Source: Selaginella moellendorffii
Lineage: Eukaryota > Plantae > Lycopodiophyta
Assembly: GCF_000143415.4 (NCBI RefSeq)
Contig: NW_003314341.1
Span: forward strand, 864,905-928,904
Length of the DNA: 64,000 nucleotides
Direction: 5' to 3'
The position numbers and the translations under genes were made by a program. The first letter of the stretch is position 1. Each line of letters begins with the position of its first letter. Below the pieces are notes generated by a model. That model was not told the DNA's origin and did no database searches. It saw only the letters and a program-made list of their open reading frames with translations. Below, piece after piece: positions 46,778 to 47,924 of the stretch.

Positions 46778-47924
46778 TGTAAGGAACCGACTCCCCGAGA
46801 TGTCGTAGGCTAAAGGATCCCCAAAAGCTTGACCGAAGTGACAAAGAGTTCATCGGATGGGACCAAGTCGAGGATCGAGTCCAAGACCGACTCTAGGACC
46901 GAGTTCGAGATAGAGTCCGGAATCGAATCCGAGACCGACTCGGGGACCGAGTTCGAGTCCGAGTTCGAGACCGAGTTCGAGACGGAGTCCGGATCCGAAA
47001 TCGGGTCCGAGACCGAGTCCGAGGTCGAGTCCGAGGTCGGGTCCGAGATCGGGTCCGAGATCGAGTCCGTGATCGAGTCCGAACCCGAATCCGAAGTCGG
47101 ATCCGAAATCGGGTCCGAGATCGAGCCAGAGACTAAGTCCAAATACTAATACGGGTCAAGGGGTGAAAGCCCAAAGCGTGCGTCTCCCAGGGGGGGGGGG
47201 CTGCAGGGGGTTCCAAAAGTATAGTAGGGATAGTGAGGTCCAGGAACCAGTTTAGAAGGGACTCTCCAGTTGGGCTTCCAAACCGACTTGAGGTTGGGAC
47301 TGGGACCGAGGGGCCTTGGGTGGGAGTGAGCGTGGACTTGGCTGGTGCCGGAGGGGCCATCCAAGGAAGTGCTCAAGAGCAGCTCCCACTCCCGAAAGGG
47401 AAACCGATTGCGGTGCTCCCGGCTCAGGTGGAGTGGTGCCCCACTTGAGTACCTTGTGGCTCATTGGTCCTCGCCCTTCCGGGGGCTTGGGCCTTTCCTT
47501 CGGGATGGAAGAGGGGGGGTAGAGGTACCCATACCGGGCCGTTAGGCCACGGTGTTTCGCCCCGACGTCCCGAAGCAAGTGCTGCACCCAAGGCTTGGGA
47601 TTTAGAGGGTCCCATGATCAAGCCTTGTGATACCTTGGGGTGTTAGGAATCTGGAGGCTTGGTGTGCTTGGCTGCTTGTGCCTGCGGGGAGTGTAGCCGA
47701 ACCTTAAGTCCAGTCTAACCCGGGGAGGGGGATTGGGAGAGATTTGGGAATCCGTAGATGGATGGCTAACACTCCGTTGCTCGTGCAGTAAGTAGTTGAA
47801 ACCAAGTAGGAGCTGGCACCATAGGCGAGAACCTTGGCGAGGGAACTTAGCACAAGCCAAGGCGGAGTTGGTCGGATAGGCGAGGTAAGCTGGCAAATTG
47901 GAAAGGAAAAATTTGTGGCTTACA
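46778..47924 (+). mobile_element. 3' LTR, family C, abutting rDNA IGS subrepeats
   Basis: Purine-rich tract GGGTGGTGGAG upstream; TGTAAG...CTTACA termini; promoter motif at 47161/47220. Confidence 0.85.

Follow-up and report, generated by a model that had tools for sequence, protein, structure and literature searches.

Why do the long terminal repeats (LTRs) of retrotransposons that lie beside a ribosomal gene array resemble, over about 100 bp, the promoter of that array? The question arises from a 64,000-nt stretch of Selaginella moellendorffii DNA (contig NW_003314341.1, positions 864,905 to 928,904), hereafter called the window, which contains both such LTRs and 35S ribosomal DNA (rDNA). 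A preliminary description, made from the letters of the window alone, had proposed that these elements took over the RNA polymerase I (Pol I) promoter of the rDNA. Our computational analysis leads to a tentative reading of the same kind, in which the LTRs captured the host 35S promoter as their working promoter, use of Pol I included; taken as one statement, we give it somewhat less than an even chance. On the alignments described below, the LTR block and the rDNA promoter are almost certainly homologous and not alike by chance.

The block common to LTRs and rDNA

The comparison involves the following features of the rDNA and of the element that ends in LTR C.

46778-47924, + strand: LTR C, the 3' LTR of a 5'-truncated chromovirus, which starts TGTAAGG and ends CTTACA
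47126-47238, + strand: promoter-like block in LTR C, with box 1 at 47161-47177 and box 2, TATAGTAGGG, at 47220-47229
45103-46374, + strand: open reading frame (ORF) pieces of the LTR C element with integrase core, Tf2-type SH3 domain and chromodomain (Pfam rve 1.5e-12, SH3_Tf2-1 2.3e-16, Chromo 1.4e-16)
49033-49145, + strand: gene promoter block of the first rDNA unit, with box 1 at 49068, TATAGTAGGG at 49127-49136 and the predicted +1 near 49133
61634-61746, + strand: promoter block of the second rDNA unit, read as identical to 49033-49145

Over 113 nt, the LTR C block was 86.7% identical to both rDNA blocks. This is in keeping with the preliminary description, which had called about 100 bp of this LTR near-identical to the two rDNA sites and had placed those sites about 2 kb upstream of 18S; TATAGTAGGG, at 49127 and 61728, lies 2.05 kb before 18S. 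LTR C was taken to be the 3' LTR of a chromovirus because the integrase, SH3 and chromodomain ORF pieces directly precede it. Its start was placed with the help of an RNA-like contig, which aligns with 46736-46780 and then runs on into the start of an A-type LTR (see below), and its U3 (unique 3') region is filled by a 12-nt microsatellite (46874-47125). The element is truncated at its 5' side beside an inverted piece of reverse transcriptase, and its integrase is split into three ORFs, the first of which (45103-45489, + strand) overlaps at its start with the reverse-transcriptase fragment (44734-45156, - strand). In a protein look-up, the integrase-chromodomain ORF had relatives only at or below 54% identity, and an ORF in the R-U5 (repeat and unique 5') part of LTR C had no match among 1.84 billion representatives.

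Further LTRs in the window were found to carry the block or parts of it.

41487-42623, + strand: LTR B, a 5' LTR (TGTGAC...CTACA), with the block at 41992-42121, box 1 at 42026 and box 2 at 42086
42626-42637, + strand: primer binding site (PBS) of the initiator methionine tRNA (tRNA-iMet) type after LTR B, TGGTATTAGAGA, a pattern match with 2 mismatches located 2 nt past the LTR end
22747-24401, - strand: LTR A1, a solo LTR that has TG..CA ends and is flanked by CTTTT as its 5-bp target duplication, with box 1 at 23748-23732 and box 2, TATAGTAAGG, at 23689-23680
11532-12773, - strand: LTR A2, likewise solo and with TG..CA ends, flanked by the 5-bp target duplication CTAGC, with box 1 intact at 12147-12131
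20442-21846, + strand: AT-rich, A-like 5' LTR (the "decayed LTR" of the preliminary description), with an exact box 1 at 20853 and TATAGTA as box 2 at 20912
21850-21861, + strand: PBS after the AT-rich LTR, TGGTATCAGAAC
17866-18742, + strand: second copy of the AT-rich LTR, 5'-truncated just after box 1, with box 2 decayed to TATAATA (17892-17898) and a decayed PBS at 18746

The LTRs that carry the block are genuine, as seen from their TG..CA ends, from the target duplications of A1 and A2, from the tRNA-Met-type PBS of LTR B and the AT-rich LTR, and from the integrase-chromodomain pieces before LTR C. Taken together, an integrase with a C-terminal chromodomain before the 3' LTR, TG..CA ends, 5-bp duplications and a tRNA-Met PBS are features of chromoviruses. 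No intact element, i.e., a complete series of Gag, protease, reverse transcriptase, RNase H and integrase between two matching LTRs, was present in the 64-kb window. LTRs B and C were considered as the two ends of a single element (41487-47924) and this was ruled out, given that they have only the block in common, that there is no matching target duplication and that an inverted reverse-transcriptase piece, the only one in the window, lies between them. A decayed copy of the PBS and leader of a B-type element was observed at 39660-40108 (73% identical to 42647-43089), with no recognizable LTR or promoter block upstream of it. Motifs of the G-box-like type CACGTG were observed four in tandem in the R-U5 part of LTR B (42488-42545), and as single copies in the spacer upstream of the rDNA promoter (48170-48185 and 48925-48937) and near the start of LTR A (24340-24355, - strand).

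Box 1, the 17-mer GGGTGAAAGCCCAAAGC, occurs in 11 exact copies in the window, of which two belong to the rDNA units, four to the 241-bp spacer repeats and five to LTRs, and every other site has at least four mismatches. When box 1 was scored as the 16-mer GGGTGAAAGCCCAAAG, the same number of matches (11) was obtained with 0 mismatches, and shuffled sequences gave 0.73 even when three mismatches were allowed. Chance resemblance was ruled out by these shuffle statistics together with the bimodal distribution of mismatches. TATAGTAGGG was exact at 42086, 47220, 49127 and 61728, and had one mismatch at 23689-23680 (- strand). A TATAGTA-type box follows 59-60 nt after box 1 in four of the five LTRs that bear box 1; the fifth, LTR A2, has lost box 2 through an internal deletion of about 390 bp. 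All coordinates and spacings of the preliminary description were reproduced, the box starts being 59 nt apart in the rDNA, LTR C, LTR A and the AT-rich LTR, 60 nt apart in LTR B and 58 nt apart in the spacer repeats. Among the LTRs, the spacing stays at 59-60 nt even though A has a different sequence between the boxes from that of B and C. In all LTRs examined, the block sits in the middle of the LTR and faces the PBS/U5 end, and the earlier statement that the motif points to the PBS end in every LTR held each time, with either a PBS or a U5 end located on that side.

The LTR B block was 79.7% identical to the rDNA block over 138 nt. The upstream edge of the homology is sharp, at rDNA position 49033 for B and C alike, and the downstream edge lies about 12 nt past the initiator, as the preliminary description had it when it let the similarity stop just past box 2; in LTR B a weak similarity continues to about +30. 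That description had also spoken of three dissimilar families. This stands for LTR B, which has only the block in common with C and A, and needs correction for the others; A, C and the AT-rich LTR are distant relatives that align over most of their length at 60-64% identity, with common ends (C versus A 63.5%; the AT-rich LTR versus A1 60-64%, from box 1 to the LTR end). A single capture in a common ancestor, followed by selection or re-homogenization, fits these relations as well as several captures do.

The probable 35S promoter and its RNA

The rDNA part of the window contains the following features.

49146-51181, + strand: 5' external transcribed spacer (ETS), with + strand RNA coverage
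51182-52991, + strand: 18S (Rfam)
53313-53466, + strand: 5.8S (Rfam)
53639-57027, + strand: 25S (Rfam)
57148-58247, + strand: four 241-bp spacer repeats just after 25S, each with an exact box 1 and, 58 nt downstream, a degenerate box 2, GATAGTGGGG
59608-59726, + strand: complete 5S rRNA gene inside the 35S intergenic spacer (Rfam)
63788: start of the next 18S (Rfam)

By self-comparison, the rDNA unit has a period of 12,606 bp. Homology to rDNA starts at 47925, so the array's left edge falls within the window. The final base of LTR C (47924, ..CTTACA) abuts this first base of rDNA homology, which belongs to 16-bp spacer repeats, and because of this abutment the left edge can be read as an LTR insertion or recombination point, possibly as an assembly join.

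An assembly join at 47924/47925 would favor the view that the likeness of LTRs and rDNA is due to misassembly, or else to chance or to orphan rDNA fragments mistaken for parts of LTRs. We find this scarcely credible. The shuffle statistics exclude chance, and a contig from the Logan collection (L002), independent of this assembly, is 99.5% identical across the upstream sequence, the promoter block and the ETS of the rDNA, and so supports the rDNA context. Orphan rDNA fragments, or a degenerate border unit of the array, were rejected on the grounds that the blocks lie within LTRs that have target duplications or a PBS, and that no other spacer, ETS or internal transcribed spacer sequence was found to the left of 47925, apart from the 12-nt microsatellite motif.

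The layout of the rDNA block is that of a plant 35S Pol I promoter, with the initiator upstream of 18S and preceded by spacer subrepeats and an AT-rich stretch. Downstream of the 241-bp repeats, the spacer has 16-bp repeats, 84-bp repeats, an A-rich stretch and the promoter block, in that order; upstream of the first-unit promoter block, the A-rich stretch lies at 48960-49000. The 241-bp repeats look like spacer promoters or enhancers. TATAGTAGGG is the transcription initiation site used in Avena rDNA (PMC5407837). A palindrome, CCGGACATGTCCGG, was observed within the 16-bp spacer repeats at 47925-48127 and 60203-60759, and a similar motif lies just upstream of box 1 in the AT-rich LTR (20805-20845).

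Two stranded RNA-seq runs and two sets of RNA-like contigs were mapped over 46400-51100, i.e., over LTR C and the rDNA promoter and ETS. RNA depth was 0 over 47970-49068, reads started in the bin 49069-49225, and the 5' ETS was covered on the + strand at a depth of about 5-30x. Contigs from two other studies begin at 49149, where the contig is joined to adapter sequence, and at 49155, which is 16-22 nt past the predicted +1 (the A that precedes GGG in TATAGTA/GGG). Ordinary RNA-seq usually loses about 16-22 nt at the 5' end, and because of this typical loss the rDNA data fit the predicted start well, although not to the single base. With no RNA detected over the 1.1 kb upstream and a pre-rRNA 5' end 16-22 nt past the predicted start, it is very likely that the rDNA block serves as the Pol I gene promoter. 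The preliminary description had made its case depend on a pre-rRNA start within the motif at 49127-49136, and at a resolution of about 20 nt the RNA does begin there. Its central comparison is upheld: the LTR block and the rDNA gene promoter are homologous, the rDNA copy is located at the start of the pre-rRNA, and the LTR copies are located at the U3/R junction of genuine LTRs.

Constraint, direction of transfer and choice of polymerase

Identities to the rDNA gene promoter were computed over the 80-nt promoter core.

LTR C: 0.93
LTR B: 0.88
LTR A1: 0.75
Spacer repeats of the rDNA itself: 0.67

The LTRs carry, in sense orientation, a complete copy of a Pol I core promoter, i.e., a block from about -100 to +12 that is 73-93% identical to the rDNA and has kept both boxes and their spacing. 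Both boxes and the 59-60 nt spacing are kept, whereas outside the block the LTRs have diverged to 60% identity or so far that no likeness is recognizable. An alignment of four LTRs showed one strong peak of conservation, the block, with a mean pairwise identity of 0.70-0.78 versus 0.1-0.5 elsewhere. Without constraint and at a background of 60%, a match at all 17 positions of box 1 is expected with a frequency of about 0.6^17 = 2e-4 per pair. The AT-rich LTR (GC content 0.37 versus 0.56 in A) has nevertheless kept 10 of the 10 G/C positions of box 1 and has lost only the adjoining CpG. Since box identity exceeds the background and the G/C positions were kept in an AT-rich LTR, the boxes are either under constraint in the element lineages or repeatedly renewed.

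Renewal is central to another explanation, in which the block is a passenger with no role of its own, kept similar to rDNA by recombination or gene conversion with the neighboring array, or by template switching with spacer transcripts. All verified copies do lie within 40 kb of the array edge, and the transposon Pokey is known to evolve in concert with rDNA (PMC3849761). This explanation is nonetheless very unlikely, because box 1 is still exact in the AT-rich copies and in solo LTRs that are old and diverged, and the sequence between the boxes has not been homogenized to the rDNA version.

As to direction, the block probably passed from the rDNA to the LTRs. TATA(G/T)TA-GGG is a long-conserved plant Pol I start signal, and for this reason the initiator is taken to be ancestral in the rDNA and must once have moved from there into an LTR. 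A later transfer back from LTR to array may have followed. The opposite course, in which the LTRs were the donors and the rDNA promoter was overwritten by a C- or B-like LTR block that then spread by concerted evolution, draws on the core identities above, by which the gene promoter is nearer to LTR C and LTR B than to its own spacer repeats. It also draws on the LTR microsatellite motif, which recurs a short way past the rDNA start and, in inverted form, within the spacer repeats, and on the chromoviruses known in and beside rDNA (PMC10946416). Against it, the initiator fits the pan-plant Pol I consensus, such that an LTR donor must first have taken it from rDNA, and no similarity to an LTR end, to U3 or to R flanks the rDNA block. 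We consider it distinctly unlikely that the LTRs were the donors. In a related search at word sizes of 7-9, the rDNA block was rejected as the remnant of a solo LTR, there being no LTR-like flanking sequence on either side.

The microsatellite itself, whose unit is of the GAGTCCGAGATG type, occupies the U3 of LTRs A and C just upstream of box 1 (46874-47125; 23749-24169, - strand; 12148-12542, - strand), where it forms a long tract before box 1 of LTR A1. It is also found right after the rDNA transcription start (49165-49215) and, inverted, in the 241-bp repeats (57309-57377). As a second component common to LTRs and rDNA, it hints at an origin from a permuted spacer repeat. A link between LTR A and the spacer repeats through an "older promoter version" (the GTGAGC-CC stretch) was considered and dropped, the identity being 0.58 as compared with 0.68 to the gene promoter.

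Returning to capture from the rDNA, we propose that a block of the host 35S gene promoter (about -100 to +12) would have been taken into chromovirus-type Ty3/gypsy LTRs at the U3/R junction. There it would be kept by selection on the elements as a working promoter, perhaps also by repeated exchange with the rDNA, and it would draw in the Pol I initiation factors of the host and thereby set the start of element RNA at TATAGTA/GGG. In plants, a stretch from about -55 to +6 is sufficient as a Pol I core promoter, and ectopically placed rDNA promoters are active in Arabidopsis. A captured core promoter would look like the -100 to +12 segment found here. We infer, reasonably if tentatively, that Pol I may transcribe the elements.

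A number of observations count against this. No RNA was found to start at or just after the LTR C motif, depth being 0 over 47185-47341 in all four data sets, while the same RNA runs do detect the 5' ETS, at about 10x. Sense reads at about 10x were observed over the R-U5 part of LTR C (47393-47749); they show about 4% differences and constant foreign sequence on both sides, and for these two reasons they are ascribed to an expressed transcript from elsewhere that contains a C-like LTR fragment. The silence at LTR C may simply mean that the family is silent. In the rDNA, the pre-rRNA 5' end is placed only within about 20 nt, and a start up to about 49150 is compatible with the RNA data, as is a start some 25 nt past a TATA-like box. 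Autonomous elements need a translatable mRNA, and Pol I transcripts are uncapped. The implied R-U5 is unusually long (535-940 nt), and all verified copies, as noted above, lie beside the nucleolus organizer region. That autonomous lycophyte chromoviruses make their genomic RNA by Pol I, from a captured rDNA promoter that keeps pace with the host promoter, is doubtful, if conceivable.

The same RNA data bear on an alternative in which the LTRs use RNA polymerase II (Pol II), where TATAGTA would act as a TATA box, transcription would start about 25-30 nt beyond it and box 1 would be the site of an upstream factor; the likeness to rDNA would then reflect common origin only. Measured from the first T of TATAGTA, the contigs beginning at 49149 and 49155 start 22-28 nt downstream, so that even the rDNA +1 is not fixed by the data. 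In addition, LTR elements are normally driven by Pol II, their Gag-Pol has to be made from capped mRNA, the initiator resembles a TATA box, and clusters of G-boxes, which are typical Pol II regulatory sites, lie in LTR B and near the start of LTR A. Use of Pol II leaves unexplained, however, why the same 17 nt and the same spacing should be required by two different transcription systems, and the end of the block about 12 nt past the Pol I initiator is what is expected of a captured Pol I core promoter. We regard it as unlikely, albeit an alternative to be reckoned with.

Neighboring features, related systems and significance

Searches beyond the window added no copies to the set and reached no sister species. 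The bipartite motif had 0 hits in a metagenome scan; the 17-mer alone had 100 hits in metagenomes, none with box 2 at the right distance, and these look like chance matches. A search with the ORF that spans the promoter returned one Logan contig, which represents the same rDNA. Box 1 was absent from two Selaginella moellendorffii loci (34 kb, gene-rich), an amount of sequence too small to be meaningful.

Elsewhere in the window, a host-like gene is located at 28583-29991 (+ strand), followed by a PHD finger; its ORF at 28583-29713 has homologues only in Selaginella moellendorffii, at 57-66% identity. These homologues and the linkage of the 5S gene to the 35S unit jointly indicate a lycophyte, probably a Selaginella. 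A piece of ORF at 33001-33333 (+ strand) matches eIF4E (3.6e-13). An ORF with a DUF7869 domain (1.5e-29) adjoins a 632-residue ORF that has no Pfam match (7129-8238 and 5170-7068, both + strand). Within the array, the 5S gene lies in the same strand as the 35S genes (the linked, or L-type, arrangement), 2.6 kb after 25S, and tandem repeats of 67-68 bp were observed just upstream of it (59176-59523).

Host-promoter capture by LTR elements is so far known only for 5S and RNA polymerase III (Pol III), in Cassandra and Ajax. A 2024 review of rDNA-derived sequence in mobile elements covers 5S promoters (short interspersed nuclear elements, i.e., SINEs, Cassandra and Ajax), 28S sequence (SINE28) and intergenic spacer repeats (Pokey), and gives no LTR with a 35S promoter (PMC10946416). 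Full-text literature searches found nothing closer, in agreement with the earlier statement that no such case had been described.

The Cassandra elements, which are terminal-repeat retrotransposons in miniature (TRIMs), and Ajax of ribbon worms are likewise LTR retroelements with a host rRNA-gene promoter in the LTR, and Cassandra reportedly changes along with the 5S promoter of its host (PMC10946416). The promoter here is that of the 35S genes, a Pol I promoter upstream of the transcribed region, whereas that of Cassandra is an internal Pol III promoter; the carriers are chromovirus-type LTRs of 1.1-1.7 kb and not miniature, non-coding TRIMs. In these LTRs no 5S sequence was found, Rfam at its gathering threshold placing 5S only at 59608-59726. 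Because they have no 5S sequence and are not miniature, the LTRs are an analogue of Cassandra and not a member of it.

Pokey, a piggyBac DNA transposon of Daphnia, carries 200-bp repeats derived from the intergenic spacer that stay similar to host rDNA across diverged lineages (PMC3849761). It differs in being a DNA transposon that inserts in 28S, and what it carries in a 5' non-coding region are subrepeats of the spacer and not a gene promoter at a start site. The non-LTR retrotransposons R1 and R2 offer a retroelement RNA made by Pol I, which for the LTRs here is only proposed; R elements are promoterless and are co-transcribed within 28S, whereas the LTRs have a free-standing promoter copy outside the rRNA genes. 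Galadriel-type chromoviruses (Beon, TRRT, Monkey) are chromodomain Ty3/gypsy elements that are also physically tied to 35S rDNA (PMC10946416; PMC2679016), but the reports on them cover insertion into 18S or rDNA arrays and not a Pol I promoter held in common with the LTR. Finally, the rDNA of the window is like that of other plants in its TATAGTAGGG initiator, AT-rich upstream stretch, degenerate promoter subrepeats and 2-kb 5' ETS, and differs in that copies of the core promoter also occur outside the rDNA, in the LTRs of mobile elements.

If the capture and the use of Pol I are true, these elements would provide the first example of an LTR retroelement lineage that relies on Pol I, as well as the first autonomous case, and retroelements could use all three nuclear polymerases. 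The question would then be how an uncapped Pol I transcript can serve as both genome and message. The LTRs would provide natural ectopic Pol I promoters for studies of nucleolar targeting and rDNA silencing, and the elements might serve as a source or store of variants of the rDNA promoter. Even if the LTRs use Pol II, the occurrence of one 17-nt element, with its spacing, in two transcription systems needs explaining. Given that Pol I promoters evolve fast and are species-specific, the paired rDNA and LTR copies would constitute a built-in test of co-evolution between the host promoter and the elements.

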